In this document: one piece after another, positions 3,501-29,100 of the stretch
Position numbering within the stretch: the stretch's first letter is position 1
Layout of the letters: every line of letters starts with the position of its first letter
Source: Mantamonas sphyraenae STR306
Taxonomy: Eukaryota; Protista; CRuMs
Length of the DNA stretch: 64,000 nucleotides
NCBI GenBank assembly: GCA_026936335.1
Contig: JAPMXV010000049.1
Span: 248,001-312,000, forward strand
Reading direction: 5' to 3'
Notes under the pieces: generated by a model
Databases searched by the model: none
The model's input: the letters and a program-made list of their open reading frames with translations, nothing else
Told to the model about the DNA's origin: nothing
Translations under genes and position numbers: made by a program

Positions 3501-6500
3501 CGCAGCCAGTGCCTCCTTCATCTGCGTACGCTGCTCCCCACGTTCCCTTTCAAACTCTTCTCGCTCTTTCTGCACCGCCTCATCAAGCGCAGCCTTTCTC
3601 TCCTCCTCCATCTGCGCCCTCAAAGCGGCCAACGCCTCCTCCTTCTCCGTTTCCTTCAGCTGCACTGCCCCAGCCCACTTGCGACGCGACCCAGCCAGCT
3701 GCATCACCATCACCGCTTGTTTCTTCGCCGCCTCTCGTCGCCGCTCTCGCTCATCCCGACCATGGCCATCCACGCCATCATCCGTTCTCGACTCTGTGTG
3801 TGCCCCGCCTTCCTCGTGGTCCACTTCTGCCTCCACATAGGCCCGACGCACACTGCCCGTGTGCTTTTGCGCTCGCGCCATCCACACATCCTCACTGCCA
3901 CCGTTACCAGCACCACCACCAGCGCCAGTATCGCTACCCACGTCGTCACCGCCATTGCCCCAGCCCACAGTGTTCACCTCCTCCACACCCTCTCTGTACA
4001 CGGCGCCCAGTCGTCCATCCATCATCTCCGCCTCCAAGTGGTGGGCCATATCTGTCCCCGTCAGCTCTTGGGCCCTCGCACACACGACACAGCTGTCGAC
4101 GTCGTGCCTCAGCGGGTTCTCTGCACGCTCCTGTGCCAGCAGTGCCTCGCAATGGTCACGCGCAGCAGCCAACGCGACCAAGTGCGCCGCGTGCGCAAGC
4201 TCCAATTCCAACGCCGTCTGCGACGCCATACGACGCTCCTCAGCCACTGCCTCTGCTGTCCGCTCTTGCAGTGCCAATGCACCTGCCAGCCATTGCTGCT
4301 GGGTGTCCCATGCAGCCCACAGCTCTCGACGTTGGCACTGTGCACGCTCCTGCACATCAACAATCGCGTCCATTCCTTCGGACGAGAGTGTGTGACGCAC
4401 CCCGCCGACGTTGTCTGCAATCGACACAACGTCGAGTGTGCGACGGTGATCAGCTTCCAGACGGCTCCGCAGTGCCACCAGTGCCTGGTCGTGTTCAGCA
4501 CGAGCTGCTTCCAGGGTGGCTTGTGCAGCCCGTCCCAACGAGGATTGTTGCTCATCCAGCGCCTCTTGCTTCTCTCTCTCTAGCTGTTGGGCTTGATTCT
4601 CGAGCGCCTCTTGCTTCTCCATCTCCAGATGGCGGGCTTGGTCTCGCAACGCCGACTGTTTCTGCGCCTCCAGGTCGTGCGCCAGACTGTTCAACGCCGC
4701 ACGCTTCTCTTCTTCAAACTGCCTGGACATCTGTTTCAATCTGTGCTTTTCCTCCACACGATTGCTTTCACTGTCTTCAAGCTTGGAGTATGCGTTCTTA
4801 AGCGCCAACTTAATCTGCTTCAACTTTGCCCGATGCTCTTCTCGCTCTGTGTCAAGCTCTTCTTCGTGAGATTCAACCAGATCTGCGATCTGGTTTTCGT
4901 GTGACACTTGAAGCTCGTCCACCAAACTTCGGGATTCCATCTGCGCATCCCGAAGCTGACGCAACAGCATAGCTGCGTGATCTTCGTGTTCCGAAGACAG
5001 TTCATGGTAGAGGTCATCGAGCGCAGCCTCTCTCTCCTCCTCCATCTGCGCCCTCAAAGCGGCCAACGCCTCCTCCTTCTCCGTTTCCTTCAGCTGCACT
5101 GCCCCAGCCCACTTGCGACGCGACCCAGCCAGCTGCATCACCATCACCGCTTGTTTCTTCGCCGCCTCTCGTCGCCGCTCTCGCTCATCCCGACCATGGC
5201 CATCCACGCCATCATCCGTTCTCGACTCTGTGTGTGCCCCGCCTTCCTCGTGGTCCACTTCTGCCTCCACATAGGCCCGACGCACACTGCCCGTATGCTT
5301 TTGCGCTAGCGCCATCCACACATCCTCACTGCCACCGTTACCAGTACCACCACCAGCGCCAGTATCGCTACCCACGTCGTCACCGCCATTGCCCCAGCCC
5401 ACAGTGTTCACCGCCTCCACACCCTCTCTGTACACGGCGCCCAGTCGTCCATCCATCACCTCCGCCTCCAAGTGGTGGGCCATATCTGTCCCCGTCAGCT
5501 CTTGGGCCCTCGCACACACGACACAGCTGTCGACGTCGTGCCTCAGCGGGTTCTCTGCACGCTCCTGTGCCAGCAGTGCCTCGCAATGATCACGCGAAGC
5601 AGCCAACGCGACCAAGTGCGCCGCGTGCGCAAGCTCCAATTCCAACGCCGTCTGCGACGCCATACGACGCTCCTCAGCCACTGCCTCTGCTGTCCGCTCT
5701 TGCAGTGCCAATGCACCTGCCAGCCATTGCTGCTGGGTGTCCCATGCAGCCCACAGCTCTCGACGTTGGCACTGTGCACGCTCCTGCACATCAACAATCG
5801 CGTCCATTCCTTCGGACGAGAGTGTGTGACGCACCCCGCCGACGTTGTCTGCAATCGACACAACGTCGAGTGTGCGACGGTGATCAGCTTCCAGACGGCT
5901 CCGCAGTGCCACCAGTGCCTGGTCGTGTTCAGCACGAGCTGCTTCCAGGGTGGCTTGTGCAGCCCGTCCCAACGAGGATTGTTGCTCATCCAGCGCCTCT
6001 TGCTTCTCTCTCTCTAGCTGTTGGGCCTGGGATTGCAGAACTGAATCTTGCTCCCTCTCATGCATCTGATCCTTGACAACGAGCGCTTGTGCATGCTGTT
6101 CCTTCAGTTCTGCCACAGCCTTGTCATGCTCTTCCTTCAGCTCAGTCAGTGCATCCTCATGCGACCCATCCTTGACAACGAGCGCTTGTGCATGTTGCTC
6201 CTTCAGTTCTGCCACAGCCTTGCCATGCTCTTCCTTCAGCCCAGACATGGCCTTGTCATGCTCTTTCTTCAGCTCAGTCAATGCATCCTCATGCGACTCA
6301 TCCTTGACAACGAGCGCTTGCGCATGCTGCTCCTGCAGTTCTGCCACAGTCTTGTCATGCTGTTCCTTCAGCTCAGACATGGCCTTGTCATGCTCTTCCT
6401 TCAGCTCAGTCAGTGCATCCTCATGCGACTCATCCTTGATAACGAGCGCCTGTGCATGCTGTTCCTTCAGTTCTGCCACAGTCTTGTCATGCTGTTCCTT

Positions 6501-9500
6501 CAGTTCAACCACCACTGTGTCGTGCTCCTTCTCCAGCCCAGTCACCACTACCTCGTGCTCTGCCTTCATCGCAGCCAGTGCCTCCTTCATCTGCGTACGC
6601 TGCTCCCCACGTTCCCTTTCAAACTCTTCTCGCTCCTTCTGCACCGCCTCATCAAGCGCAGCCTCTCTCTCCTCCTCCATCTGCGCCCTCAAAGCGGCCA
6701 ACGCCTCCTCCTTCTCCGTTTCCTTCAGCTGCACTGCCCCAGCCCACTTGCGACGCGACCCAGCCAGCTGCATCACCATCACCGCTTGTTTCTTCGCCGC
6801 CTCTCGTCGCCGCTCTCGCTCATACCGACCATGGCCATCCACGCCATCATCCGTTCTCGACTCTGTGTGTGCCCCGCCTTCCTCGTGGTCCACTTCTGCC
6901 TCCACATAGGCCCGACGCACACTGCCCGTATGCTTTTGCGCTAGCGCCATCCACACATCCTCACTGCCACCGTTACCAGTACCACCACCAGCGCCAGTAT
7001 CGCTACCCACGTCGTCACCGCCATTGCCCCAGCCCACAGTGTTCACCGCCTCCACACCCTCTCTGTACACGGCGCCCAGTCGTCCATCCATCATCTCTGC
7101 CTCCAAGTGGTGGGCCATATGTGTCCCTGTCAGCTCTTGGGCCCTCGCACACACGACACAGCTGTCGACGTCGTGCCTCAGCGGGTTCTCTGCACGCTCC
7201 TGTGCCAGCAGTGCCTCGCAATGATCACGCGCAGCAGCCAACGCGACCAAGTGCGCCGCGTGCGCAAGCTCCAATTCCAACGCCGTCTGCGACGCCATAC
7301 GACGCTCCTCAGCCACTGCCTCTGCTGTCCGCTCTTGCAGTGCCAATGCCCCAGCCAGCCATTGCTGCTGGGTGTCCCATGCAGCCCACAGCTCTCGACG
7401 TTGACACTGTGCGCGTTCTTGCGCCTCCATGCGGAGCTGTGCGTTTGACCATTGTACCCCACTGTGTAAAGTGTTGCTCTGCAACAACTTCGGAAGCACT
7501 GACCCGCGTGCCAGCAGTTTACGTGCAAGGCTCTGCTCGCGTCGAATGCGCAGGGACATTCCCCTTTCCGAGTTCTGCGCGTACCACAGATGTCTTCTGG
7601 CCGCTGTTCTAGAAGCCGTGCCGTCCTTCGAAACCACATCCTCAGGTGCGAAACGCATCATGTAGCGCTTCCCAGATCCGTGTGCTCGCTTGTTGCTCAC
7701 TACCAACGACGCTTCGCACGTCTCCGGTTGGATCAATGACCAGGAGCATTTCACAGCCACTTCGGGCAGGCCACTTGAATCGATGGCCGCGTCTCGGCGT
7801 GCTGCCCATTCCAGTTCACTCAAACGATGCTGAAGTCGCGCATTGGTTCGCTGTGCCGTTCTGAGCTCTCCCTGCGCAATCAACACCTGCGCTTTGACCT
7901 TCTTCACGGCTGGATTCACGCTGGAGCGCTCAAGCCTATCTACCCGGCGCGTTGGCGCGACATCTGATTGCGTGTGCGCTCGCCTGTTCTCCGCGCCGAA
8001 TCTCTCCGCATCCTTCCACACTTCCTCCTCATCCAGAACAGGAGACAAAGCCGCTGGCACGGCGTACGGATGCCATACCTCCTGGCATTCCTTCTCCAGT
8101 CGCGAGCACTGTGCCTGCAAGCGTGCCACGGTCTCCACTGCATCTTCATCCCCTATCATTGCCTTGAAGCGATCCGCTTCTGCATATGCCTGGCGGAGTT
8201 GCTTACGTTTCAGCTTCAGCTCGCGCTCCAGCTGCATCAGAACACTCGGGCTGGCACCTGCATTTTCACCGACATCGCGAAGACCCTCATACCGCCGTTG
8301 GAACGTCAGCTTCTCGTCTTTTGCCTCCCTCAGTTCCTGACGAAGATTCTGCTCCGCATGGGTGGCCGCGGCAAGTGCGGATTGCACCATTCCCAACTCG
8401 CTCTGGCACCGAAGGTACCTGTCGGAAAGTTCGTCACGCTCTCGCATGGCCTCATTCCGTTCCGTGCGCATGGTTTCAGTTTGCTCTTGTCCACGATGCA
8501 GCTCTTCTTGGCTTTGTTTGGTGTGTACGCGAGCTGCATGCAGCTCCTCCACTGCCTTCCGCCTACCCTCTCGTGCCATTTGATGTTCCATTCGTGCCTC
8601 CTCCAGCTTAGCTTGTAGGTGATACGCCTCTGCTTGCTGCGTGTCACTGTTTTCGTCACCGTCTGTTCTCGTGGCCCGAAGATGAGCATTCTCAACCATG
8701 ATGCTGTCGAGCTTTTCACGCAATCGTTGAGCCTCGTGTTGAGCCTCCTTCAACGCGCTGCTGCTTTGATCTGCTTGCACTGTGGTTTCGGCAAGGCGTT
8801 CTTGCAGCCGTTTGACCGTGTCTCTCATCTGCACATTGTCTCGCTGCGCCTGCTCAAGTGCACGCCGGTGCTGAACTGCCTCACGCAGTGCTTGGTCCAG
8901 AGAGTCTTGAAGCTCATCCATCTTCACGGTTGGAGCGTGCTGTCCTTCCATCTCGTCTCCGTCGGTGCGCACCGTCATCTCCAGCTCCTCGCGCGTGCCG
9001 TCCAGCTCATCTTGCAGCTGGGCATGGGTCTCTGCCAATCGCCAGTGCTCAAACTCGTTGCGTTTGGCGTCTATTTCGACCGTTTGCAGCTTGTCTTGCA
9101 GAGAGTGGACGCGCTCCCGAAGCTCCTCGCGATCGGCCTCGAGGGCTTCCGCGCGTGCCAGAGCCCGCTCGAGTTCGCTGCGATCAACACGTGCCCTCAC
9201 TAGCTCCAGTTCGGCAGCATGGGAAGCTTCTTTGGCCTTCTGAGCCTCGTGTGTTTGAAGGATCGACTGCTGCTGTGCGCTTGCCAGGGCCTCGCGCATT
9301 TCCTCTGCACCGGCCAGCTCCCTCTGCAAAAGGTTGATCTGTGCACGAGCGTCTCCAAGCTCCACCTCACGATCTTGCAGACGAGCATGAACCGCGTTTC
9401 TCTCCCGTTGCAGCTCTTCTTCGTGTGTCCGGGCTCGAGCGACCATCGTCTCCGCTATCTGTTGCTCCTTTGAATGCAAGGCCGCTGCAGCCTCGGCCTG

Positions 9501-12500
9501 TCGTTGCATCTCGTTCACAAGCTCGGTGGCTTTGCGTGCTTCTTCTTGGGCCACTTCCACTTGTTGCCGTTGTTGTTGTAGCGCTTGCTTGATCTCAGCT
9601 TGCTGCTCGAGTTGTGTCTGCTGTGTCTCCACAGTCCCATTCAGCTTCTCCACAACCCGCTCCAGTCCTTTCGCTTCCCTCTCCGCCCTCAATGCTTCCT
9701 CTCGTGCCACCTGTGCCTCTTGCAAAGCTGCTCTTCGTCCCTCTTTTGCCTCCTGGGCTTCCTTTTCAGCTGATTTCGCTCGTGCTTCTGCTTCTCTTGC
9801 TCTCCCCTCAACAGCTTCCATTCGCACGCGCATCTCCTCCGCCTGTACATCCACCACCACCTTACCATCTTTCCCCTCCTCCCCTTCCTCTCCCCAGCGT
9901 CGCATCAACCGTTTCGCCTCCATCCCAGCCAGTGCTGCTTTTCCCTCCGCTTCCCCCAACGCTTTGTTCCACTCTCTCCGTGCTGCTTCGTGTTCTGCCC
10001 GCGCACGTGCAACTTCCCTTCGTGCCTCTTCGGCTTCAGCCATCGCTGCGTCTGCCCTCTGTTCCTCGCGCACCCGTCTGCTCTCCTCTCGTTTTCGTTC
10101 TCGTTCGCTGGCCCGAGCAGCATTCTCCAGCGCTTCACACTTCCGTTCATGCTCTTCTTGTGCACGCAACGTTTCCCTCTGAGCATCTGCAAGGGCAGCC
10201 CGTGCACTGCTGCGTTCCTCGACCCTCGCCAGCTTTGTGCTTGCCAGTGTTGCCTCCATCGTCCGCACAGCCTCTCGCTCTTGTTCCCACAGTGCGTGTG
10301 CTTCTGCTGCGCGCTGTTCCGCCCGCGTGCGCTCTTTCCTCTTCTCTCTTCTTCTCCATACTCTGTACATCCAGCTTGCGTTCCAACTGGGCCACTTTCA
10401 GAGCCAGGCGCTGCTCGTTTTCCACAGCCTCGTGCCTGCGAGCCTGTTCGGATTCCACTTCCAGTTGCAACTCATCCACGAGCGACTGAAGGTCGTTGTG
10501 TGCTTGTTCCTGACTTTGCTTGTCTGCACGCAGGTCGGCCACCGATTGGGTGAGCGTTTGGCACTCTTGCTCAGCATTGGCTGCACGTTGCTGTGCGAGG
10601 TCGAGCTGCTGTTGGAGAGAGTCAATGGTGAGCTGACGAGTGGCAAGCTGATCGTTGGAGCGGTTCAGCTGATCACGAAGGTCAGCCTGCGCTTGTTGTG
10701 TGTCGTCCAAGCTGCTCTGGCTCGTGGACGCTTCTGCTTCAAAGGTGTTGCATCGGGAATTGGATTCAGCAAGTGACTGCTCCAGCACCTGTGCTGTGGA
10801 TTCCAGGGTCTGGATGCGATCACAAGCTTCCGCGAGTTGTTCTGACGAGTGTGCTGCAGCTGCCTCAGCCTCTTCCCTGCTGCGTTGCAAGCGATCACCC
10901 AATGCTTGAGCGGCTCGGCGCAATGCTGTGTTCTCCTCGAGCAAGCGCTGCATGTCGGCGTCGTGCTCTCCGCGCGCTTTGACCTCACTCTCCAGCCGTG
11001 CTGCGACACTTGACGCCTCTGCTTGTGCATGTGACGCGGCGCGCAGTGCTTGCTCCAGGCGCTCGCGTAGGATGGGTAGCTGCTCGAGTTGTGTCTGCTG
11101 TGTCTCCACAGTCCCATTCAGCTTCTCCACAACCCGCTCCAGTCCTTTCGCTTCCCTCTCCGCCCTCAATGCTTCCTCTCGTGCCACCTGTGCCTCTTGC
11201 AAAGCTGCTCTTCGTCCCTCTTTTGCCTCCTGGGCTTCCTTTTCAGCTGATTTCGCTCGTGCTTCTGCTTCTCTTGCTCTCCCCTCAACAGCTTCCATTC
11301 GCACGCGCATCTCCTCCGCCTGTACATCCACCACCACCTTACCATCTTTCCCCTCCTCCCCTTCCTCTCCCCAGCGTCGCATCAACCGTTTCGCCTCCAT
11401 CCCAGCCAGTGCTGCTTTTCCCTCCGCTTCCCCCAACGCTTTGTTCCACTCTCTCCGTGCTGCTTCGTGTTCTGCCCGCGCACGTGCAACTTCCCTTCGT
11501 GCCTCTTCGGCTTCAGCCATCGCTGCGTCTGCCCTCTGTTCCTCGCGCACCCGTCTGCTCTCCTCTCGTTTTCGTTCTCGTTCGCTGGCCCGAGCAGCAT
11601 TCTCCAGCGCTTCACACTTCCGTTCATGCTCTTCTTGTGCACGCAACGTTTCCCTCTGAGCATCTGCAAGGGCAGCCCGTGCACTGCTGCGTTCCTCGAC
11701 CCTCGCCAGCTTTGTGCTTGCCAGTGTTGCCTCCATCGTCCGCACAGCCTCTCGCTCTTGTTCCCACAGTGCGTGTGCTTCTGCTGCGCGCTGTTCCGCC
11801 CGCGTGCGCTCTTCCTCTTCTCTCTTCTTCTCCATACTCTGTACATCCAGCTTGCGTTCCAACTGGGCCACTTTCAGAGCCAGGCGCTGCTCGTTTTCCA
11901 CAGCCTCGTGCCTGCGAGCCTGTTCGGATTCCACTTCCAGTTGCAACTCATCCACGAGCGACTGAAGGTCGTTGTGTGCTTGTTCCTGACTATGCTTGTC
12001 TGCACGTAGGTCGGCCACCGATTGGGTGAGCGTTTGGCACTCTTGCTCAGCATTGGCAGCACGTTGCTGTGCGACGTCGAGCTGCTGTTGGAGAGAGTCA
12101 ATGGTGAGCTGGCGAGTGGCAAGCTGATCGTTGGAGCGGTTCAGCTGATCACGAAGGTCAGCCTGCGCTTGTTGTGTGTCGTCCAAGCTGCTCCTGCTCT
12201 CCTGCAGCGCCGACGACATCTCTTGGGCTTGGCGGAGGTGAGATACGTGCTCATCTTGCAGCTGCTGATATAAAAGCTGTGTATCCACGAGTTCCTGGCG
12301 CACTTTGAGCAGCTCGCCCTGCTGCGAGGTGTACGCGGTTGCCAATTCGCGATTCTGTGCTTGCAACGCCACCACCCGCCGGCCAGCCTCTTGTAGAGCC
12401 TGCCGCTGTTTCTTTGTGTGTTGTTCATGTTCAAGGAGCAGCGAGTGCACCTGAACAAGTTGTTGATCCTTGCGTGCTAGTTCTGAGCGCAGTTCGTTGC

Positions 12501-12879
12501 ACAGGCGTTGCGACTCATCTCTCGCCGTCCGCTCCCCCTTCAGACGTTCCTCCAGGGCGCTTATGGCTGCCCCCATGGGTGGGGATGCCCCATCGCTTGC
12601 CATGCCCGTGTCACCATTGCCCCCAGAGAGCAAGTCTTGGAGACGTTGGTCCTGCATCGATTTTTCTTCGTGCGACTTTTGCAACGCCGCCTGTAGCCTG
12701 CATTGTTCCTCCTCATGCGCCATCACTACCTGTGTCAGCTCCTGGCACTTGGCGATAGCCGAGTTGAGGGCAAAGCGCAATTTTTGTTCGCTTCGCAGCC
12801 ACCCTCGCTTCTCCTTCCGAAGCAAACGGAGCTCCTCGTCCTGTGTCGAGGTTCCAGCCGAATCAGCACGTGCACTCAT
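1..12879 (-). CDS. Giant coiled-coil protein 'gene B' (>4,290 aa, 3' end beyond window), with internal duplications, three HxxxxCxxC motifs and a long hendecad repeat
   Basis: Starts at ATG 12879 (MSARADSAG...). ORF 10147..13329 joins ORF 3033..10370 across a 1-nt insertion near 10336, then joins the open repeat frame running to base 1 across a 2-nt deletion near 3074-3078. Both indels are visible against intact sister copies. Composition is E/Q/K/R/A/L-rich and helical. Confidence 0.8.
662..2839 (-). repeat. Higher-order repeat, 6 x 363 bp (11 x 33 bp = 121 aa)
   Basis: The marker cagcgcagacatggcc recurs at 662, 1025, 1388, 1751, 2114 and 2477, an exact 363-bp period. Confidence 0.93.
3360..7410 (-). 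repeat. Three near-identical ~1-kb coding modules (approx. 3360-4592, 5018-6026, 6430-7410), each with the CxxC motif and a Gly-rich linker
   Basis: Offsets of 1434 and 3069 bp, e.g. ORFs 3946..4152, 5380..5586 and 7015..7221 are near-identical. A second short hendecad array lies at ~6072-6560. Confidence 0.92.
9602..12193 (-). repeat. Direct duplication of ~1.1 kb inside gene B (9602-10717 and 11079-12193)
   Basis: Near-identical sequence at offset 1476/1477. The copies differ by one extra T near 10336 and a few substitutions. Confidence 0.93.
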
Positions 12880-14189: not shown

Positions 14190-17100
14190 TCATCGGTTGC
14201 CTCTGCTCACTCTTCCTCCCCGATTCTTGGTCTTGCTGCTGCTGCTGCGGCTGCTCATGCCACTCATGTCGCTCGAGCTTCCTTCGTCCCCTTCCTCCAA
14301 CTCCGGCACCCAGCCCAACGGAACACCCACACGCCGCTCCGCGCGCTCGCTATCGTCGTAGGCGTGTCCAGTAGACTCTCGTTCGCCCGTCAGCTCAAAG
14401 TTGCGTGTGCAGATGGGGCAGTCGTCTGGCACGTGATGCAACGGGTTGCTGCTGCGCTCCTCTTCCAACTCCCGCAGCAGCTCCTTGCCTTGCAACGCTC
14501 CGCGCGACACTTGCTCCTGCAGACCGTGTGCGTATCCGCTCAATTGTGCATAGGCGTTCCTCAGCGACTGCAACTTCTCCTGCGCAGCCTCACGCTGTTC
14601 CAGAGCCCGTTCGAGCTGTGCCGCCAGCTCCACCATGTCCCGCTCCATCCCGCGTTTCTGTTCCAGCTCGCGTTGGCACACCTCCAACTGCACTCGCATC
14701 TCCTGTGCTGCGTCCACTTTCTCCTGCAGCTCACGCACACGTGCTTCTGCACGCTCCACGTCTCGCTGCAGTCGTGCCTCGGCCTCGCCTCCCCCTGCGC
14801 TCACGCCTACGTTGCCACTGCTTCCTCCGCGCATGCGCATCTGCTTTTCCAGGTTGCCCACTTGCTCTTCCAAAACCTGTCGTCGTACCTTTTCCTCCTG
14901 TGCGCTCTTGCTAGCTTCTTTGCGGTCTCTCTCGCTGGATTCCAACCTCCTCTTGGCTTCTCTCAGCTGCTCCTCCGCCTTGGCTCCCATCTCTGCCTTG
15001 GCCACCAGTTGCGCATGTTCCGCTTCCAGTTGCTTGCTCTGCGCTTCCCGTGCCGCACTCTCGCGTCCAAGTTCACGCAGCTGCTCTCGCATTTCCTGGT
15101 TCTCTGCTGTGACCTTGTCTAGCGCAGCCTTGATCTGCTTGCTCTCTCCTTCTCCAATCTGAACCTGCATCTTGCTCTCAGACAAGCTTCGCTCCAGCTC
15201 CATCTCATGCTGTCGCTGCTTCTCCCGCTCCTCCCGCTCGCGCTCCAGCTTCGCCTCTGTCTTGGCCTGTTGCTCTTCTGCAGCTGCCTTTGCCTTACGC
15301 TCACGCTCCAACGCCGCTTCCAGATCCAGCGCCTTTCCTGCCATGGCGTTGTGTTCGCTCGCCGCAGCGCGTTTCTCGCGATGCAGTTCCTCCACTTCGT
15401 CGCGAAGCTCTTGCATCAATGCTTCCTGACTCTTCAGCAGCTCCTTGTTCTGCTTTAGCACAGCCACGTCCACTTGCAAGCTCTGCAACGCCTTGCTCGC
15501 CTCCTTGTGCTCCTCTCGTACCGCACGTTCGCTCGCCTCTGCTGCTGCCAATCGTGTCTCCAGCTCCGCCTTGCTCTTTTCCAGTTGTGCAACCTCTCGG
15601 CTGGCTCGCTCCACTGCACGCTCTGCTTTGCCTGCTCGCTCGCTCCACATGCGCTCTTGCTCCTGTGCCTTTTCCACCGCACGCTCCTTCGCCTCCCGCT
15701 CCCGCTCCGCCTCCCTCTCCGCGCTCACTGCTCGCTTTTCCGCCGCGGCCACCGCTGCCGAGTCCTTTGTCAAGCTGCGTCGCTCTTCTTCTTCCTTGGA
15801 CATCTTTGCCTCTATGCGTGCCAGAGCGCTTTCTGCCGCAACGGCGCGGCTCTGCGCCTGGCTCACATCGATCTCCAGCTCCTTCACACGTGTCTCCAGC
15901 TTCGACTTTGTCTTGCGTGTCTTGTTGTACGCCTCCTGCACACGTTGCTTCTCGTCCTCCACCCTGCGCTTCTCCTCGCGCACCTGTCGCATTTGCTCCA
16001 GACTCTCTGCCCACTTACTTTCCAGCTCCTGGGTGCGGCTCTCCTTCTGCGTGGCCTTCTCTTTCGCTTCCTTTGCGCTGGTCTCGGCCAGTCCTGCGCG
16101 CTGCTCCGCTGCATTCTTGTCCAGCTCCACACGCTGCAGTGCTTTCTCCAGCTCGCGTATCTGTCCTTCCAGCTGCTTCTTTTCCTGTCGCACTTCGTTG
16201 TACGCCTGCTGGCTTCTCTCCAACTCACGTCTCACACGCTCCAACTCGCCCGATTGTTCCACGCTCCTCTCTCGCTCTTCCACCAGCCGCATGCTCGATT
16301 GCTGCGACTGCTCCCGTGCACTGCGCTCCAGCTCCAGCTGGTGCTCCATCTGCGCCCTTTCGCTCTCCACCTGCTGCATGCGTTCTTCGGCGCGTTGAAG
16401 GTTGCTCATGGCTGCCTCCAGTCGCTGTGCTGCTCGCTGGCTCTCCAGTTCCGCTTCGTGTACCCGTTCCTCCATCTTTTCCAGTTTGCTCTCTGCACGC
16501 TCCGTACCACGCTTCGCCTCCCGTTCGCTTTCCTGACTCGCGCGCATCTGTGCTTGCAGACGCGCCACCTCCAGCTCAAGCGCCCCCTTTTCCTGCTTCA
16601 GTGCGTCGCACGCATCGCGCGCCGCCTGCAGCTCGCCGCGCAGCACCTGCGCCTCCTTGGCTGCTGTGTCTGCTTCCTTCTGCACACGTCGCACCTCATT
16701 TTCCAGCTGCTGCACGCGCAGTTCGTGCTCGTTCCGCATGCGTTCCACACGTGCCTCATTGCTTGTCTGCGCACGTGTCTCGTTTTCTCTCAGGTCGGCT
16801 CGCAGCTCCTCCACGGTCTTGCGAAGACCCACCACCTCTTCTGCACTTCGCTCCGCACGCCCATTCGCCTCCCGCGCGCTCATCTGTGCCTCACTCACCT
16901 CCTTTTGCGCACGCAGTGCCCACTCTGCGCTGTCGTCCTTCCTTTCCAGCGCCAGCTGTGCATTCTGCTTTTCCAGGTCGGCGATGCGCTGCCGCTCCAG
17001 CTCCACAGCTGCTCCGAGTTCGTCCGCTCGCTGTTCCGCTGCGCGCAGCTCTTTCGCCTTCGCCTCACCCTTTACTTGCTCCACGTCCAGCGCCCGCTGC

Positions 17101-20100
17101 AGACGGGCAACCTCTGCCGCAAGGGTTTCTCGTTCCCGTTCCACCTTTTGCCATCCGCTTCGCTCCTTCTGTTTCTCCTCGGCCGTCTGCTCGCGCCGCT
17201 TCAGCTCTTGCCTTGCCTCGTTCACCTCCTCCCTGCTCAGCTCAAGCTCCTTGCGCACACGTCCCAGCTCCTGGCTCAGCTCGCTGCGCTTATCTTCCGT
17301 GCTGCGTTGCTCTACCACCAGCCCGGCCAGCTTCTTCTCCAGCTCCATTTGCACCTCCTGCTGCGTTTGTACTCTCTTTGCAGCGCTGGATGCCTCCTGG
17401 CGCGCCTCTTCCATCGCCAACTCCATTGCACGTTGCTGTTCGCGAGCAAGCTGAACCGCTTGCGTCTGTTCCGTGTACCGTCGCTTCTGCTCCGACACCG
17501 CCTGTTCCAGAGCTGCCACGCGTCCCTCTGCTTCCTTATTCTTGCGCTTCAGAGCCTTGGCCAGCTCCGTGGCCTTGTGCAGCTTGCGTGCCTGGTCGTC
17601 GCGCATGCGTTGCACTCGGCTCAGCTCCTCCACAGCTGCCGCTTCGCTCTTTTCGCGTGCGCTCATTTGCTTGGCGTTCTCCTCCATCTGCCGGCTCATG
17701 CTGCGCGTATGTGCCTCGGCCTTTTCCAGTGCACGCTGCACACCCTGCAGCTCCTCCTGCAATTCCTCCACATGTTTGGCCAGCACGGACAGTTCCGCTT
17801 CGCGTCCGCTCACCTGCATCCTCAACTCCTCCACTCGTTTCTCCTGCGCTTCCGCCATGCTGCTGACACGTTCCTGTGTCGCACGCAGCTCCTGACGCAA
17901 CTCGCTTCTCTCTTCGCTCACGCTCGCCAGCCGCTCCGTCGTCGCCTCCAGTTTCTCGCTCGTCGCACGCAGGCTTGCACGCAGGCCATCCACCTCGTCC
18001 TCCTTTGCACTCTGCATCGTTTCCACACGCACAAGGTTCGTGCTCGTTTCGTTCAGCGCCGTCTCTGCAGACGACGCACGCGCAGCCTCTGCTTGCGCTT
18101 GCGTCTCCAGCCGCTCCAGCTTGGCTTCCAACGCCTCTTTGTCCATCGCCAGTCGCTCCGCGCGCTCCTTGCTCTCTGCAAGCTGCGCGTTCAAACGCAC
18201 GCGTTGTTCCTGGTGAGAAACAATCTGTTCTTCGCGTGCCCTGGCCGCATCTTCCAGTTGCTCCACACGCTGCGACATCCGGCCCAGCTCCTCCTTTGCC
18301 TCGCGCGTCGCCTGCTTCCATTCGTTCAGACTCTCTTCAAGCGCCTGCACGCGTCGCTTCTCCTCGTGTACACTCTCCCTACTCGACGCACCGCGCTGCT
18401 CCTCCACCTCCAGCGCATCCTGCTTGGCCTGCAGCGCCGCCTTGGTCTCTTCCACCGCCCCTCGCAGTGTGTTGATCTCCAGTTGCACCTTGAGCTCGCG
18501 TTCCGCACGCGCCTCCTTCATCGACTGCACCTCGGCCTGCAGCCGTTCCACCTCGCCCTCCTTCTTCTCCAGAGCCGCCGCCAGCACGTCGCGAGAATCT
18601 CGCAGCGTGCGAACGTCCGTCGCGTGCTGCTTGTTCGCCTCAAACAGCCGGTTGTACTCCTTCTCCACACTCGCCTTTGCCGCCTCGTGTTCACTCTTCA
18701 TCTTCAGCAGCTGCTCCTGGAACCTCTGTCTGCTCGTTTCCGCCGCACGGAAGTGTTGCATCTGACGCTCATTCACAAGGGCCTCCGCCTTTGCTCGCGA
18801 TTCCTTTGCGTTGCGGTGTGCTGCTCGCAGCGCCTCCACCTCGTCTTTCAGGCTCTTTGCAGTCTCGGCCGTCTGTTCCTCACGCGCCCGCACAATCTGC
18901 ACTTCTGTTTCCAGCTCTCCCCGAGCTTCGCGGCACACGTTCAAGTCGCGCTTGCTCGTCTCCAGTTCCCGTTGCAGCTGGCTCGCCTCTGCTTCGCTCG
19001 CCTCGCGTTTCTCCTGCTCCCGTTCGCATCGTTGCTTCCATTCGCGCACGTCCATCCTCAGTTGAGAAATATTTTCTTCTTGTTGCCTCACGTTCTCCTG
19101 CGCGTGGCCCAGGTCTGTTTCTGCGTTTTGACGCAACTGACGCAACTCCACCAGCGCCGCACGCTGCTTCCCGTTCTCTTCCTCCAGCGCCGCCACCTGC
19201 TTTTGCGCCTCCTCCAAACGCACACGCGCTTCCTTCAGGCCGCTTTCCATCTCCTTGCGTCCGCGCTTGCTGCGTGCCACCTCGCTGCGCATCCGGTCGG
19301 CTTCGCGCACATGCTCCGCACGCGCACTCGCCAGCTCCTTCTCCAGCGAACCCACCTTCTCCTGTGCGCTTTGCAGACTCGCTTGTGTGCGCTCGGCCCC
19401 TTCGCGGCTAGCTTGAAGCTGTGTCTGCGCCGTGGACAGCGCTGTGCTCAGATCTCCTTTGCTTGCGCTCAGCGCAGACAACTGCTCGCGTGCCTCTTGC
19501 AGCCTTGCGTCCAGCTTTTCCGCACGTTTCTCCACCTTGGCCAGCTGCTCCTCTTGGTTCTTGCGAAGCGCCATGTCCTCCTCACGGCCCTTGCGCAGCA
19601 TGGACGCCTCTTGCTCCGCCGCCCGTTTGCTCGCAACCAGTTGCTCCTGCGCCTCACGCATTTGTGCAAGTGCCTCCTGCAGCTGCATGCGCGTTGCACT
19701 CTCGTTCGCCACATCTGCTTGCAGCTCACTCACGCTGCTGTTCAGCTCCTCCTCGCGTGCTGCACGTTCTTCCTTGGCCTCGCGCAGCAGCGCCTGAAGC
19801 GTTTGCACTTGTTCCTGCATCTGCTCTCGTTTGCTCTGCTCGATGTCTGCTCGCCGTTCGCAAACCTCCGCCTTGCTGCGCAGCTCTTCAATCTGCTTCA
19901 CCGCCTGCTCCCGCTGTTCGACAGTTCCATCCAGCTGACTCGACAATAGGCGCGACTCTTCCTGGAAAGACATTTGCAGCTCGCTCGCACGGGCCTCTGC
20001 CTCATCCTTGCGCGTGCGCGCGTCCTCCAGCAGCTCCTCCAGTCTCGTCACCTTGTTGCGCAGCTGCTCCATTGCAAAGCGCATGTCAGACTGTTGTTCC

Positions 20101-23100
20101 TGTGCCTCGCTCAGCTGGTTCAACACCTCGCGCTTCTCCTTGGCCAGATCGTCCTTCTCTTGCGACCTCTGCTCCAGGTGGCTGGCCAGTGTTTCCATTT
20201 GCTTTCGCTGTGACTCTACCTGCGAACGCAAACTCACGTCTTCCAGCTCGATGCGCCTGTTCTCCTCCTGGCAAAGCCTATGTGCTTCCCTCATGCGACT
20301 CAGCTCCTCGAAAAGCCCACTTGCACGCGTTGCCTCCACCCTGCCCTCGTTCTCCAACACGGCCAGTCGCAAACTTTGCTCTCGCTGACGGCTGTCCAGC
20401 TCACGCACACGCGCCTGCTCTGCACCCAGCGCCTGTTCGCTCTTTTCCAGTGCAGCCACGACCTCTTCGCGCTTTGTCACAGCCGCCTCCAATCGCATCT
20501 CCAGCGCTCGTATCTCGCCGCGGAGCGTGTTTTGAACGGCCTGCTGCTCTTGCGACACGTTTGCCTCCTTGCCACGCTCCTTCTCTAGCGCCTTTTGCAG
20601 TCCCTGCACTTCGCGCTTCGACTCGGCGAGTGCCTGCTCCGCCGCTCGCTGTGCCTTGTGCACACCGTCCAGCTCTCGTTCCAGCGTGCGCACACTCTCG
20701 CGTGCACGATCTCGCTCGCGCGTCGCCTCTTCCAACTCTCCTTCCACTGTTTGCACGCGCAGCTGAGCTACGCGCACCTGTTCGCGCAGCTCTTCACTTG
20801 TGTGCTCATTCGTGCGCAGCTGTTCCTCCAGCCCGCGCCTCGCACGCCGGCCCTTTTCGTATCGCTCACTCACACGCTCCAACTCCTTTTCCACCTTGGC
20901 AAGCTCTTCGCGCGCCCGCTCTTCGCTCATGCCACGTTTCGACAGGGCCAAACGCGCGTCTGCAAGCTGCTCGCGCAGCTGCTCGTTCTCCGCACCCTGC
21001 CTCTCTGCCACGCCCCTGCTCTGCTCAACCTCCTGCTGCAGCGCCTCGATGCGCGGTAGATGTCGGTTTGACACTTCGCTGCGCAGCGTCTCGTGCTTGT
21101 TCACAAGCTCCGTGTGCTGCTGCACGAGCTCCTCATGCTTCGCCACAAGCCGCTCCTCTCTTGCGCGTCCCTCTCCCAGACTCTGTTCGGCATGGCCCAT
21201 CTTGACGGCCAGCACGCGATGCGACGATCGCTCCTCTTCCAGACGCACGCGCGCCGCTTCGGCCTTGCCCTCAGCCTCTGCAGCCTCGTCCTTGGCTGCC
21301 TCTGCCTCGCTGCGTGATTCGGCAAGCGCACGTCGCAATTCGCTCGTTTCGCGCGCACGTGCACTCTGCTCGTCCGCCAGTTGCTGCTCCAACGACCTAC
21401 GCCCATCCCGCTCTGCATCAAGCAGCTCACGTACCTCCCGCAGCTCCGTTTCTTGTTTGCTCGCCGTCTCTTTGCTCAGTGCGTACATCTGCTGCACAGA
21501 TTCCACACGGAACACTTGTTCCTGGACTGCTGCACGCAGCTCCTGCACCGTTGAACGCTGTGCCTCCTCTTGTCGCCTCATCGCGTCCGCCTCCCGCCGC
21601 GCTTCTTCGTACCGGCTCTCCAGGCTTTCCACTTGGGCGCCCAGATCCTGTTGTGAACGGTTCAGCGCACCCACAGTACTTGTGGCCTCACGCAGTCCAC
21701 TTTCCAGCGCTTCTGCATGCGATTGTTCGTTTGTGCGCAGTTCCTTGAGCGTTTCCAACTCGCGTGCAGTCTGGTCGTACGTCGCTTGCAGCTCGTTCAA
21801 CTTGCGCGTGCTGCTTCGCAGCCTGTTTTTCAGCTCACTGCCCACCTCTTGCTGCTCCTTCAGCACTTGCTCCACCTGCGCCGTCAAGCGTTCTTTTTGC
21901 TCGACAAGCCGCTCGTTCTCTTTGCTCAACGACTGCATCTCGTACGCCATTCCCTGCACCTTTTTCTCCGATGCCGTCAGTTGCTGTCGCACTCGGTCCA
22001 ACTCGCTCTCAGTCGCAGCCATTTCTCCGCGCATACGCTGCACGTCGCTACTCTGCTCGTTTAGCCTCTGCTGCAACCCCTTGCGCCGCTCTTCTTCCAT
22101 TTCCAGCGTCGATTGCACGTGCACCACTTGCAGCTCCGCCTTGCTCAGCTGGTCTTGCGCGCGCGAGTGCTCCTCTCGCACGCTACGCAGCTCGTCGGCC
22201 AGCTGCAGACGTGATGCTCGTTCTTCTGCAAGCTTGGCCTCTGTTTGCACACGCACAAACTCGGCCTTTTCTCGCTCGCCCATCGCCTGCATGTTTTGCG
22301 TCGTCACCTTCCCGATCTGCTTCTTCACCTCTTCCACTTCGCGCTCATACCTCCCCTCCACCGCCTCCAGTTCACCCTGCAGCTGCCGCACACGCGCATT
22401 GTGTGCCTCTTCCTTGCGCAGGGCAGCCTCTTCCACGCTGCTCATCTGGCTCTGTACTCGTGCAAGCTTGACCTGCGTGTCACTCAGCGTCGCCGACTGT
22501 GTACGCAGTTGCTCCTCCGCCATCGCCTTGGCCTCCCGCAACTGCCCCACTTCTCGCTCCAATGCCTCGCTCGCGTCCCGCCGTCCCTGCACTTCCATCT
22601 GCAGCGTGCTCACTTGCGCCTCACTCTCTTTGCGAGCTCGCTTGTACTTGTTCACCTGTTCCTGCAGTCGCGCACGCGCTGCCTCCACCTGACTCATCCC
22701 AGCCACGGTGCGCTCCAGCTCACGCACTTGTGTGCGCAAGCGCTCATTCTCAGCTCCCACTCGCTCCGCACGCACGCTTGCCTTGCTTTCCAGCTCACCC
22801 TGCCGCTCCGCTCGCTCCCGCAGATCCTTGCACGCGTTGCGTTCAGCATCCAGCTCCTTTTCTACCTGCTCACATCTCTTTTCGAGCGACTCGACCTGCT
22901 CAACCAGCCGTGCTTGGGTCACTTCACGCACTCGCATCTCCTCTCCCAGCGACTGCTTCTCTTCACCCAACAAACGCATTTCACCGCGTAGCTTCTCTCG
23001 TGCGGCGCTGGATGCGGCCAGCTCTTCACGCACGCCACTTAGCTGCGCGCTCAGCCTTTCGTTTTCCGCGTTCAGGCGCTCGTTTGCTCCACGTGACTCG

Positions 23101-26100
23101 GCGTAACTTCGTTCCAGATCCGCCTTGACTGCCAGCAACTGCTTCTCTCGCCCCTTCACCTCCGCCATCTCCACCTGCACCTCGCGCGCAAAGTCGGCCT
23201 TGCTCTCCAGTTGAGCCCGCAAACTGTCCACCGTGTCGCTCAACGCCCGCTTTTCTGTGCGCAGTTCGCCCACGCTGCTCTCGGCCACGCTCAAGCGCAG
23301 CTCCAACGCTTTGCGTTCACGCTCCGCATTAGTGCCTGCACCACGTTGGGTTTCTTCGCGTTGCGACGCCTCGTGCAGCGCCGTCCGTGCGCTCGCCAAC
23401 TCCATGTTCACCCCCTTCAGCTCGTGCTCCATCGTGCTACGCGCCTGTACCGCTTCATGCAGCTCGGTGCGTGCTTTTGCCAACTCGTCGTGCATCTTCC
23501 TTAGCCTCTCTTCCGTCTCCACGCGCATGCGTCGCTCTTGTACCAGCTGCTCCGCGTTGGCACTTGCCTCTTCATGCGCGCTGCCCATCGCCCCTCGGCT
23601 CTCGTCCAGCTGCGAGCGCATCATGTCAATTTCCGCGGCACGTCTGCTCACTTGTGTCTCCAGATCTTGCGTCAGGTCCTGTTCTGCCATGTAGTCACGC
23701 GTCACGCTGCGCAGCTCCGCGTTCGCTTCCGACAGCTGTTGCTCTGCCACACGCAACTGCTGCGTCGTTTCTTCCAGCGCGTGTGTCTTGTCCATCAGCT
23801 CGCTGTCTCGGGCCTGTCCTTCTGTCTCGGCCTCGCGCATGGCATCCTGCAGAGCGCTCGCGTCTGCCTTGACACTCTCCAAGCTCTCGCGCAGCTCTTG
23901 CAAACGCGCCTCACTGCTCAGCTGCACTTCTTGCAGTCGCGCAGAGGTACTCTTCAGCTCTGTTTGGCTCGCAAACAAAGCCTTGTCCATCTCTGCGTGC
24001 TTGTTGCGCAGCTCCTCGTTCGCCTCGCTCAGCTCTCGCACACGGCGCTTCAGATCCTCCGCGGTCGACTTCTCCTCTTCGTACGCGCTACTGCTGCGCG
24101 ACAGGCGCTCCAGCGCATCATCCAGCTCGCTGCTCAGCCTGTCTCGCTCCACCGCGTGCAAAGACACACTCTCCTTGTGCTCCTGTCGCAACGCATTCAG
24201 CGCCTTGTCACTGCTCGCTGCAGCATTGCGTGCACGCTCTGCCTCAACCTCTCGCTCCTCTGCATACTCGCGCAGTTCTGCAAGTCGAGACTCCCAACCC
24301 GTGCGCTCCTCCTCCCGCTCTGCTTGCAGCGCCTGCATCTGCGACGTCGCTTGCTTTGCCGTCCGCTTGGTCACCTTTTTCAGCTTGGTCACTTCTTCTT
24401 CAAGCGCCTTGCGCTCCGACCCCATCTCTTTCAAACCTTCTTGCATCACAGTCATCTCCGCTGCCAGCGCCTCCCGCCTTCCCAGCGCCTCCTTGTACGC
24501 ACGCGACAGTTTGCTCTTTTCGTGTTCCAGCTGCCGCTTGGAATCCACTTCTCGCCCTTGCTCCTCACGTAGACGCTGCGTAAGCTCCTTCAGCTCGTCC
24601 CTGGCCTCTCGCAGATGGTTGCACTCACTCTCCAGTCGTGCCTTTTCCACCTGCATCGCAGCGTGCGCCTCCTGCTGCGCGGCCATCTTGTCGTAAAGGT
24701 CTTGCATCGACTTTTCCATCGTCTTCTTTTCTTCTTGCAAACGGCTCAACTGCACCTGAAGCTGCTGTGTCTCGCTGCGTGTCCTCTTGCCAGCCGCACG
24801 TTCCTCTTCCACCCGCTGCGACAACCGCCCAATCTCCTTTTCCAACGATGCCTTTGCCTTTTCCTGCTGTGTCACCGCGGCCTGTGCCTCGCCCAGCTCG
24901 TTTCTCCAACTCCCGCACGCGTCCCATCTGATCGGCAAGTTCGGTCTCCCGGGCCTTGCTCTTCTCGTCCAGCTGGCGATGCATCTCCTCCAGTGACTGG
25001 TATCCCTCCATGGCACTGTCCAGCTGGGCCATCAGCTGGTGTCTCTGCTGCGCTTCGGCCTCCATGTGCATCTGCATGTTCACCAGCTCCATCTCTGCCT
25101 CCTGCTTCTCCGCGTGGATCGCTCGGAACCTTTCCGCCGCGCGTCGCAGGCTCGCTGCAAGCTCTTCTCGCTGCGTACGCAACGTCTCCAGCTCGCCTGC
25201 TCCTTGTTCCTTCGCCACCACCAGCTCCTGCAGCGATTCGTTCAGCGCTGCCGAGCTCTCCTCTAGTGCACGTTTTGACGACACCTCCTGCTCGTACTTG
25301 CGTTGCATCGCTGCAACCAACTCGTCGTGTTCGACCTGTTGTGCCTCAAACTTGGCGTCGTATGCCGTGCTAAGCGCAGCCAGATCCTCACCCAGTTTCG
25401 TTGCCTTTTCTTCTGCCACCCGTTTCTGGTGGGTTGCCACTTCAAGGTCATGCTCCAGCGCCTGTCGCTGCTGCACCATGACCTGAAGTTGTGCCTGCAG
25501 ATGCGCCTGGTTGCTATGGCCCACCTGGCGCTCGTGTTCCAGCTGCACCTGCAACGTTTGTCGCGCATTCTCTGCCTCTTGCCTTGCTCACGCAGCTCGT
25601 CACGCTCCCGCATCCACTGCTGACGCTCTCCCTCCATACTCTTCACTGCGGCGTCGTGCTTCTCTTGCAATGCTTCCAATCGCAACGACAGCTCCAGGGA
25701 CTGCTGCTCGCCCGCCTGCACCTTTTCCGTCAGGGTGCGGTGCTCGCGCGTGTTCTTCTCTCGCGCATCCACCATCGCCTTGCTGATCTCCTGCATCTGT
25801 GCCTCCACTCGCTTCTTTTGCTCCTCCATTCCCACGATCCGGTCTTCCAGCCTCTTGCGGTCGCCCTCGCCCACCTCCAGCAGGTACTTCTTCTCCGCCA
25901 CCTCGCTTTCCAGCCTCCCAATTGTCTCCTGTTTCGACGCCACTTCGCGCCGGCTCTCGTTCAAGGCCTTCTCTTGCTGCCCCAAGTGCTCTCGCAGCTG
26001 ATCCTGCTGCACTTGTGCCTCCACCTGCACCTCGTCCAGCTTGCGGCTCAGCTCCTTCATGCTTTGCCTCTTCTTGCGCAGCTTCTCTGCAATGGCGTTC

Positions 26101-29100
26101 ATCTCGGCCATGGCCTGCTCCTTTTCTTCTCTGGCTTTCGTCGCCTGCTCTTCCCACATGGATGCTTGTCGCTCTGCCTCGGCGCGGCTCTGCTCCCGTT
26201 TTACGCTCTCCTGCTCTGCGACAGCAAGTTGGTCTGCACGAGTTTGCAGCAGCGCCTCCAGCTTGCTCTTTTGCTGTGTCAACTCTTCGAAACGCGCAGT
26301 CAGCTTTTCTGCCTCGCTCAGCTTGTCGCTCATTGTGTTGAATTCGCTGTCCACCGAGCGCATGTCTGCTGTCAGCGATTCCATTTGCTCTTCCAGCTTG
26401 GACTTTTCGTTCATCAAGCTCGTGTACTCGATGCTCAATTGGTCAGCCGTCGTCTCCATTTCCTCCTTGGCCATCTTTTCCTGCTGGTATTCAAGCAGCA
26501 CCGCATTCAGGTCGGCTTGTACGCCGGCGTGCTCATCTCGAGCTTCCTGAAGGTTGTGCTGGCACGTTTCCAGCTCGTGCCGTGCCGCACGCAGCTGCTT
26601 GCTGCTGCTCTTCAGCTCCTTCTCCAGCTTGCTCTTGTTCTTTTCCAGCTCCGCAATCACTCCCACCTTCTTCACCAGCAACTGCTCGTTGCTCTCGTTG
26701 CGATCCTTTACTGTGCGCAGCTGCTCACTCAGCTGTCGCACATGCTCCTCCAGCATATCCGTGCGGGCCGTCATCTTGGCCACCGCCTGAGCTTGCTCGT
26801 GCGTCGCCTCGTGCAGCCGCTGCACCTCTGCATCCAGACTCGCCTGCTGCTTTTGCGCCGTGTCTCGTTCTTGCTTCAGCATTGCCGCACGTTCTTCAGC
26901 TGCTGCCATTGCATCGGTGGCCAATTCCAGCTTGCTCGACAGCATCTGGATGCGCTGTGCAGACGACTGCATGCGCTCGTCCATCTCTCGTCGCTCCACG
27001 TCAAACTGCTGGTGCACATACACCAGCTGCGCCTGCAGTTGCAGCAATTCCTCCCCTGTGCTCGTGGCAACAATTTGCGTGCGCTCCGCCATGTTCATGT
27101 ACGGACGCAGCTCGCTGATCTGTTGTGCCTGGTGACTCAGTTGCTCAAACGTGGCCTCAAGGCTCGCCTGTGCGCGCACGCTCTGCCGAGACATCCTCTC
27201 GTTCAGCTTCAACACCACACGCTGGATGCGCCCGTGCTCCAGTTCCATGCGCGCGTGTCGCTTTCGTGTGTGCACCAATTCCGCTTGTAGATCCTCCACA
27301 CGCTTGCGTGACACCTGCAATTCCGCTTCCAGAGCGTCGTGGTCCACGTGTCGAGCCCTCGCATCCGCCAAGACCTCGTCCAGCGTCGTCGTCACTGCGG
27401 CCACCTCGTTCTCTAGGCCCTGGTTGCGCAGGTATGCGTCGATATACGCCTCGCGCATCGAGTGCATGTCCATTTCGTTGCTGCGCAGAGCGTTTGCCAG
27501 TTCCTCTTGGATGTGTCTCGCGTCCTGCGCACTGATTTCCGACTGAGACGCAGCCGCATCGTGCTCCTTCCGCAGCCTTTCTCGCTCTTCCTCCAGCTTG
27601 CGCTTGCTGCGCTTTGCACTCTTCAGCTCCTTTTGTGTTTCGGCCAGCTGCTTCTCCACCTGTCGAGCACGTCCTGCCATCTCCCGCAGCCGCGTGGCTT
27701 CGGCCTCCTTCTCCGCCTGACGCTTCGCAAACTCCTTGTTCGTTTCCTGCAGGCCCGCCACCATGCGCGAGCTCTCTTCCAAGGACGCACTCAAAGATTC
27801 GCGCTCTCGCGTTATCTCTTCCAGTGCCTCCTCGAATTTCTTCTTGTCCGTTCGCCGCGCCTTGCGCACGCGTCCCAGATCCTCCTTCGTCTTTTCCAGC
27901 TGTTCTGCCAACGCGTCCCTTTCCAACTCGGCTTGTTGCACGCGCTCACTCAGACCCTCGGCTTCCCGCATGTGCTCCTGTGCCAGTGTCATTTGCTCGT
28001 CGCGTTCCACACTCAGTGACTCAGCCGCGCTGCTGGCCTTGCTCGCCTTGCCACTCAAAAGACGGTTCGCTTCCACCAAGCGCTCATTCAGCTCTCGTTC
28101 TTCCTTCAACTGGCCATGAACGAGGTCCAGCGCATCCTGTTGTTCTCGGTGGCTTCGTTTCAACGCGTCCCGTTCGCTCTGCGCTTCCTGCGCTTCCTCC
28201 ATGCTTCCGTGCAACTCCCTCTGGATGTCTTCCAGGGCCTCGCGCAGCGCTGTGCTCTGTTCTCGCAGCGTTTCCAGCTCCTGGGACTCTAGAGCCTCGG
28301 TTTTGCGAAGTTCGCCCAGATCGGCAAGCTGCTGCTTCACCTCGGCCTCTGCCCGCTCTGCACGCTGTAGTGTTTGCTCCAGCTGGCGCAACGTGCTCTT
28401 ACGCTCCGTTTCCGATGCGCGTAGCTCTGCCCGCAGCGACGCAACTTCGTCCGTGAGCGCCACGACGCGAGCCCTTGCGGCCTCCACCTCTTGTGTGCGC
28501 TCGCTCAACACATGCTCCATCTCTCGCTTTACGCGGTTCTCACTCGTCAGTCTAGAAGCCACTGTTGTGAGACCCCGATGTTGCTCCTGCAGCTTCTCCT
28601 GTGCTTCGGCCAGGCGCGCATTGGCGATCTCCAGATCTTGCGCAAAATGCGCACCCTGCGACTCGCTCTGCTGCAGCTCTGCTTCTACGCGCTCTGCGCG
28701 TTCGCGCGTCGAATCCAGTGCAGTTTGTGTTTCCTCATGTGTCGTTTCCAGTTGTTGGTGCGCATCGCGCAGAGCGTACAGTTCTGCGATCAACGGCTCC
28801 ATTGCAGCCACCCGTTCGGCCAAAGCGACACGTTCAGCCTCAGCTTCCTTTCCCATCCGCGTACTCTCTCCCAGTTCATGAGCAAGCGTGCTGCACTGGT
28901 CTTCCAGATCCCGAGCGCGCTCTTCCTGACTGTTTGCCCGACGCTGTTGCTCGAGCGATTCCGCGTCTGCTCGCACCAGCGCCTCTTCTGCTTCATGGCA
29001 CCTGCTCGTCATGGCTCCCAATTGACTGTGCAAATCCGCCATGGTAGCAGAGGCGGCACGGCTGGCCTCGTGCACCGCCTCTAGCTCTGCCTCGCGCTCC

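Follow-up and report, generated by a model that had tools for sequence, protein, structure and literature searches.

Two adjacent giant genes of the protist Mantamonas sphyraenae STR306, here called A and B, raise the question of why two otherwise dissimilar coiled-coil proteins should carry the same short Cys/His motif, H-x4-C-x2-C-x-R-x3-[LM]-x-G, and what it might do there. The genes were studied in a window of 64,000 nucleotides (GenBank assembly GCA_026936335.1, contig JAPMXV010000049.1, positions 248,001 to 312,000; G000:C49:248001-312000) of a genome of 25 Mb in 78 contigs with ~60% G+C, and the minus strand of the window carries a chain of overlapping coiled-coil open frames. A sequence-only reading of this DNA had proposed the motif as a zinc clasp joining the two proteins. 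From the comparisons below we regard the motif as the core of a real orphan Cys/His module, common only to these two adjacent mega-genes and maintained by selection, which probably holds a structural zinc ion.

Copies of the motif and their similarity

The window was scanned in all six frames for CxxC-x-R and the full pattern was recovered five times, always in giant minus-strand frames and with identical spacing (Table 1). All five strings of the sequence-only reading were thereby confirmed on the minus strand, the translation of 14385-14447 being the very 21-residue string it had given and the internal gene A copy falling at 33366-33428. All five copies are present as it had counted them, but only three are independent, as the gene B copies in the window belong to a near-identical tandem cassette of 1.5 kb in which the 50-residue stretches around the motif share 96-100% identity. 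The residues kept without exception in the three diverged copies are His, Cys, Cys, Arg and Gly. The core reads C-P-I-C-T-R at the C-terminus of A and C-V-V-C-A-R and C-A-M-C-A-R in the other two copies. The A C-terminal copy and gene B also agree in the Asn-Pro-Leu that precedes the His and the Glu-Leu-Thr-Gly that follows the Arg, and the internal copy of gene A shares with the others only the H, C, C, R, an M in place of L, and the G.

A BLASTP comparison of the whole of gene A (~12,000 residues) with the whole of gene B (~7,000 residues) found the motif to be the sole significant similarity (E 1e-5 to 2e-5), and the C-terminus of A compared with one B cassette gave 15 identical residues of 28 (37.7 bits, E 8e-8). 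The gapped alignment with the fourth B copy extends over 64 columns, as far as a Gly-Trp common to both. As significant similarity was limited to this module, the earlier suggestion that A and B are ancient paralogues was not borne out at the level of whole genes. A 50-residue B piece searched against the entire 25-Mb genome in six frames matched only the four B copies and the C-terminus of A (E 8.6e-4).

The resemblance lies in the protein rather than in the DNA. Codons differ at seven of the 15 residues identical in A and B, including those for both Cys, Gly and Arg (CGC vs AGG), which argues that the protein sequence is conserved and that the DNA was not recently copied; recent gene conversion between the two genes was rejected on this ground. 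In the DNA alignment of the three copies the mean column identity was 68%. Cys accounts for only ~0.4% of residues in the giant proteins and the only CxxC pairs in the giant open frames of the window (~15,000 residues) are those of the motif copies, leaving aside clusters at overlapping, probably out-of-frame ends of open reading frames (ORFs). Over the ~19,000 residues of the two proteins, each in-frame CxxC has a His at -5, an Arg at +2 and a Gly at +8. A DNA pattern for H-x4-CxxC-x-R applied to the whole genome was too unspecific, with 1,034 matches vs 591 in the control. A motif similarity between A and B beyond chance appears well supported by these protein-level comparisons.

The internal copy of gene A is probably a genuine instance of the motif, judging from its ranking in two comparisons. 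It gave the second-best match between A and B in the BLASTP comparison, falling on the same B motif (E 0.03), and in a BLOSUM profile scan it came first among the non-self windows, narrowly (17.5 vs 15.0). BLASTP of this copy against the C-terminus of gene A gave no match, and the six-frame search of the whole genome matched it only to itself. The motif is unchanged at this copy across three public read sets of the same organism (runs X1, X2 and X3), one of which may be what the assembly was made from. In run X2 two adjacent bases of one Val codon, 20 residues upstream of the motif (window 33481-33482), are not those of the assembly, and a silent change lies 26 residues upstream of it (window 33498). 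The divergence among the read sets is so low that the unchanged motif says little about conservation.

Anatomy of the module and a candidate zinc site

The sequence-only reading had placed every copy after a coiled-coil segment and before a Gly/acidic linker. This description was correct for the A C-terminal copy and for gene B, where the motif stands directly after the coil and a Gly/acidic stretch comes next, and failed for the internal copy, which lies ~35 residues past the end of the coil with Pro/Gly-rich linkers on both sides. After the A C-terminal copy come ~65 residues that form no coil, and then the stop. In single-sequence AlphaFold 2 predictions of 106-residue pieces, the A piece formed a confident helix up to the motif that was then lost, and the B piece formed a helix, a loop and further helices, including a short downstream helix of ~30 residues predicted with low confidence.

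At a near-constant distance past the second Cys a further ligand-type residue recurs: the A C-terminal copy has His at +15, gene B has His-His at +13/+14 and the internal copy has Cys at +13. The proposal of a clasp had started from the premise that three ligands per chain leave the zinc site to be completed in trans. This premise is unsupported, as every copy has a further His or Cys, 13-15 residues past its second Cys, that is a candidate for the fourth ligand in cis and weakens the argument for completion by another chain.

A structural Zn(II) site, whether closed within one chain or between chains, is quite probable and is the likeliest function of the motif because the invariant residues are of ligand type, CxxC occurs only in this context, the proteins are presumably cytosolic and the motif sits at coil ends. 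By eye, the N-termini of A and B do not have the look of signal peptides, so both proteins should be cytosolic with their thiols reduced. We propose a lineage-restricted module of ~30-55 residues with the motif as its core, most likely holding one structural Zn(II), that would mark where the rod of the two giant proteins ends and a flexible Gly/acidic hinge starts. Asn-Pro-Leu would terminate the helix, the His at -5 and the CxxC knuckle would provide three ligands, and the fourth would come from the same chain as the His (A C-terminus, gene B) or Cys (internal copy) 13-15 residues downstream. The folded knob would then cap the rod and could act as a docking or registration point. We lean slightly towards this self-contained H-C-C-[H/C] mini-finger closed in cis since it gives a role to the invariant His as well as to the ligand that recurs downstream, and needs no partner, and hold it tentatively, at somewhat less than an even chance. 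What the sequence shows is the motif, its restriction to these two genes, its conservation in the protein and its place where coils end; that it binds zinc, through these ligands and in cis, and acts in docking is what we infer.

Several observations weigh against the mini-finger. Its downstream ligand is off strict register, the gapped alignment setting the His of A and that of B 2-3 residues apart, and its H-x4-C spacing is unlike that of any zinc finger family that matched. The predicted local distance difference test (pLDDT) score of AlphaFold 2 was only ~50 across the motif in both 106-residue pieces. Protein searches with the A C-terminal region and the B cassette region and pattern scans of metagenomes gave no homologue, and no RNA run containing the locus was found.

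Known zinc modules and rival explanations

The C-terminal region of A and the cassette region of B each retrieved nothing in a word-indexed protein search, and the 130-residue A C-terminus retrieved nothing when searched with phmmer against 1.84 billion cluster representatives. A strict back-translated DNA pattern gave 0 matches over metagenome contigs and a relaxed one gave 75, about the number expected by chance and none in a coiled-coil ORF; the few real ORFs checked among these were Fur regulators (two by Pfam). In the ESM Atlas the A piece led only to generic coiled-coil clusters and the B piece to nothing. PDB sequence searches gave no significant match, the best hits of a profile of four copies being the SALL3 C2H2 finger (E 0.32) followed by glutaredoxin active sites (E 1.2), with no Rad50 chain among them. 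With Pfam at a lax threshold (E up to 10), the A C-terminal piece matched only Rad50_zn_hook (E 0.31, 11.3 bits against a gathering cut-off of 24.3), the B piece only the weak and unrelated EutK_C (E 0.74) and the internal piece nothing. Neither a Pfam family nor a solved structure matched the motif above threshold. The blank homologue searches are not proof of absence, since sampling of the lineage appears poor and such databases give motifs this short too low a score.

The zinc site could alternatively be shared between two chains as in the Rad50 hook, where it would be a Zn(Cys)4 site made by the CxxC knuckles of both, with the His at -5 a second-shell or spare residue. It might then staple the coil end of a parallel in-register dimer, or form joins between rods (four copies on B, two on A) that build a network. 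This reading has less than an even chance, slightly below that of the mini-finger, and is a strong rival to it. The Rad50 hook (PF04423) is likewise a CxxC knuckle joined to a coiled coil, its sub-threshold match to A is aligned on the CxxC core, and in all three copies the second spacer residue is hydrophobic and an Arg stands at +2. Both of these matter in Rad50: Val446, together with Leu451 and the residues around Arg449, stabilises the Zn-bridged hairpin (PMC5093744), and Arg686 of human Rad50 forms a second interface (PMC9569753; hook structures 1L8D and 5GOX are cited in these two papers). The A C-terminal copy alone adds a spacer Pro and, at +4, an aromatic side chain, and its C-P-I-C-T-R-N-F resembles the C-H-V-C-Q-R-D-F of the Rad50 encoded by the organism itself. 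Long flanking coils are not strictly required, since a hook peptide of no more than 14 residues already gains much stability as a Zn dimer (PMC5093744), and the helix-loop-helix predicted around the B motif, albeit with low confidence, and the location of the internal copy near the midpoint of gene A would also suit a hook.

Against it, the Pfam score of A is far under the cut-off and the B and internal copies are unmatched. The hydrophobic residue at +4 (Leu451 in P. furiosus) is found in one copy of three, as Phe at the A C-terminus with Gln in B and Arg in the internal copy. No motif copy forms the tip of a long antiparallel coiled coil: no coil returns after the A C-terminal or the internal copy, and downstream of the B motif only the short helix of low confidence is predicted. 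ABC ATPase heads were not found by Pfam in the scanned pieces of A or B. The invariant His at -5 is not needed by a hook and is absent from that of Rad50, as is the downstream His/Cys. The analogy with Rad50 drawn by the sequence-only reading is therefore sound for the CxxC-x-Arg core with its hydrophobic spacer but does not extend to the antiparallel apex, and since the same C-x-[hydrophobic]-C-x-R core occurs in C2H2 fingers and Fur hairpins, the likeness, though real, is not specific. The motif was rejected as a member of the Rad50 family on the sub-threshold score, the lack of an apex position and of ATPase heads and the residue at +4 that is not kept. The organism's own Rad50 (G000:C42:132816-136412, plus strand; L018:2816-6412) has a hook that itself scores only 21.7 bits, below the Pfam cut-off, and its hook region gave no homologue in the word-indexed protein search, a sign of the fast divergence of such coiled-coil regions in this lineage.

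The clasp as first proposed, in which His, Cys and Cys of one chain and one ligand from the other protein join the rods of A and B, is a special case of closure in trans and is highly unlikely. The three invariant ligand-type residues would fit it, and within the genome the motif is confined to these two adjacent genes; however, the fourth ligand is available in cis, no residue is marked as a donor in trans and gene adjacency is weak evidence of partnership. A complex prediction of 50 residues of A and 50 residues of B with Zn gave an interaction prediction score from aligned errors (ipSAE) of 0.01, which counts neither for nor against binding. A link between A and B is unsupported by any computation. 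The CD4/CD8-Lck zinc clasp, a Zn site built from short Cys motifs of two different proteins, is a precedent for such a heterotypic clasp (PMC12198760), but it is a 2+2 site of CxC and CxxC with no His, no coiled-coil context and no sequence relation to the present motif. A conserved role other than zinc binding, be it a redox-sensitive CxxC, an interchain disulfide, a site for a different metal or a short linear motif to which a partner binds, is unlikely. Among the PDB matches below threshold, the CPYC active site of glutaredoxin is one of the best, yet this match spans 11 residues with no Pfam match beside it, the coiled-coil setting is cytosolic, and an invariant His beside CxxC with a downstream His/Cys is typical of zinc sites. 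A thioredoxin-type CxxC was rejected as no thioredoxin-fold family matched. It is very improbable that the motif has no function, the genes being decaying or unexpressed repeats or the internal copy a chance match. The many frame breaks in the window, the lack of an RNA run and the marginal significance of the internal copy would agree with this, but both frame breaks that were checked proved to be assembly deletions whose correction gives a single frame of 4,974 residues, open frames of at least 3,000 codons argue against decay, and the codon differences described above show selection on the protein sequence.

Other families that share parts of the pattern were also compared. The C2H2 (beta-beta-alpha) finger has C-x2-C-x-[KR]-x-F and a ligand 13 residues past the second Cys, as in B and the internal copy. 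The module differs from it in that no fourth ligand follows 3-5 residues further on (C-x2-C-x12-H-H in B, x14-H in A, x12-C in the internal copy) and that the invariant Gly at +8 falls where the finger helix would run. As the spacing C-x2-4-C-x12-H-x3-5-H is absent and zf-C2H2 gave no Pfam match at E up to 10, a C2H2 finger was rejected. In the Fur family (PF01475), the first CxxC hairpin of metagenomic Fur ORFs shows NP[LF]-x-H-x4-C-x2-C-x-R...G, and one such ORF also has Phe at +4 and Leu at +6 like the A copy. On two Fur-family metagenome contigs (L055:67-342 and L030:1364-1765), one ORF matches the gene A motif at 10 of 21 positions, eight of which were forced by the search pattern. In Fur, the structural Zn(Cys)4 site is completed by a second CxxC, and the His residues upstream belong to another, regulatory metal site. 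The metagenomic Fur ORFs have both this second CxxC, ~40 residues downstream, and the N-terminal winged helix, and both are missing from the module of the giant proteins; with neither a second CxxC nor a match to PF01475 a Fur-like site was rejected, and the Fur hairpin is a convergent look-alike and no relative. The C-terminal CCHC knuckles of CLIP-170 and the C-terminal CCHC finger of NEMO are small Cys/His zinc modules that follow a long coiled coil and serve as docking sites. Their ligand spacing is different, and no sequence similarity to them was found in the Pfam or PDB searches. The module is best filed nearest in kind to the zinc knuckle or zinc hook, as a putative new variant.

If it binds zinc, the module would be a compact and previously undescribed Cys/His element punctuating coiled-coil proteins that are among the longest known in a protist. 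Were the site interchain, it would carry the Rad50 hook principle over from DNA repair into the architecture of the cytoskeleton, and protein engineers would gain a simple connector that metal can switch. The boldest version is that a Rad50-type interchain hook was recruited into cytoskeletal mega-proteins. A rod of ~12,000 residues (~1.7 micrometres if fully coiled) would bear one node close to its midpoint and another at its C-terminus, the neighbouring rod of ~7,000 residues at least four, and these Zn-dependent nodes would fold, staple or cross-link the rods into a micron-scale fibre or lattice. We consider this joint reading improbable; if true, it would be the first cytoskeletal structure built by zinc hooks.

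The giant genes, their assembly and their neighbours

As the giant open frames are interrupted by frame breaks, two of them in gene A were compared with short-read contigs of the three read sets, and both were found to be single-nucleotide deletions in the assembly (Table 1). On restoring the bases at 34334 and 36331 three frames fuse into one open frame of 4,974 codons. Gene A is thus probably one gene of ~12,000 residues with an intron near its start, and its remaining three frame junctions are probably likewise caused by assembly deletions. Frame breaks in long genes of this genome should be suspected of being assembly indels.

Table 1. Coordinates of the features of genes A and B (window positions unless a contig is given)
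Feature	Position	Strand	Remarks
Gene A	14190..50421	-	ATG at 50421, one intron, one frame to the stop at 14190, ~12,000 residues; five frame junctions in the window
Gene A intron, 259 nucleotides, canonical, GTGAGT...CACAG	49362-49620	-	joins 267-codon first exon to giant second exon
Gene A, C-terminal motif copy, NPL-x-H-x4-C-x2-C-x-R-x3-L-x-G	14385..14447	-	~85 residues ahead of the stop
Gene A, extended module (coil end, motif, downstream His, Gly-Trp)	14310..14468	-	gapped alignment to gene B cassette, 53 A residues, 64 columns, E 1e-5 vs fourth B copy
Gene A, internal motif copy (probable)	33366..33428	-	inside Pro/Gly-rich non-coil linker, near protein midpoint (~residue 5,580); Cys at +13
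Gene A, remaining frame junctions	40026-40185, 25266-25587, 24628-25031	-	overlapping open frames, same style
Assembly deletion, one base	34334	.	extra G after this base in contigs of runs X1, X2 and X3
Assembly deletion, one base	36331	.	extra T after this base in X3 contig; position outside X1/X2 coverage
Gene B in the window	1..12879	-	ATG at 12879, runs off the left edge, ~7,000 residues
Gene B motif, cassette copy 1	7125..7187	-	six-frame scan
Gene B motif, cassette copy 2	5490..5552	-	six-frame scan
Gene B motif, cassette copy 3	4056..4118	-	six-frame scan
Gene B, fourth motif copy	G000:C49:243652-243801		outside the window, ~4.3 kb to the left
Gene B, frame junctions	10150-10397, 3036-3100	-	overlapping open frames, same style
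Gene B, in-frame stop	G000:C49 ~246210		~1.8 kb left of the window

Gene B continues leftwards past the window for ~8.1 kb, where its stop lies at G000:C49:239888-239890, and it has four cassettes with the motif, one in-frame stop and two breaks of the frame. The locus is therefore to be reread, with at least two frame breaks being assembly errors, gene A probably single and gene B longer than the window holds. Pfam scans of pieces of gene A, and of the main open frame of gene B with its upstream piece, gave no domain. From window 1-3100 leftwards to G000:C49:239888 gene B runs through a His-rich acidic coiled-coil repeat, the fourth cassette and a poly-Ser tail, and gene A also has a Ser-rich C-terminal tail.

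Besides the giant genes, the window encodes a HEAT-repeat protein on the minus strand (50489-52666) and, on the opposite strand to the giant genes (55708-59412), a complete Elongator subunit ELP1 as a single open frame of 1,234 codons with all five ELP1 domains.

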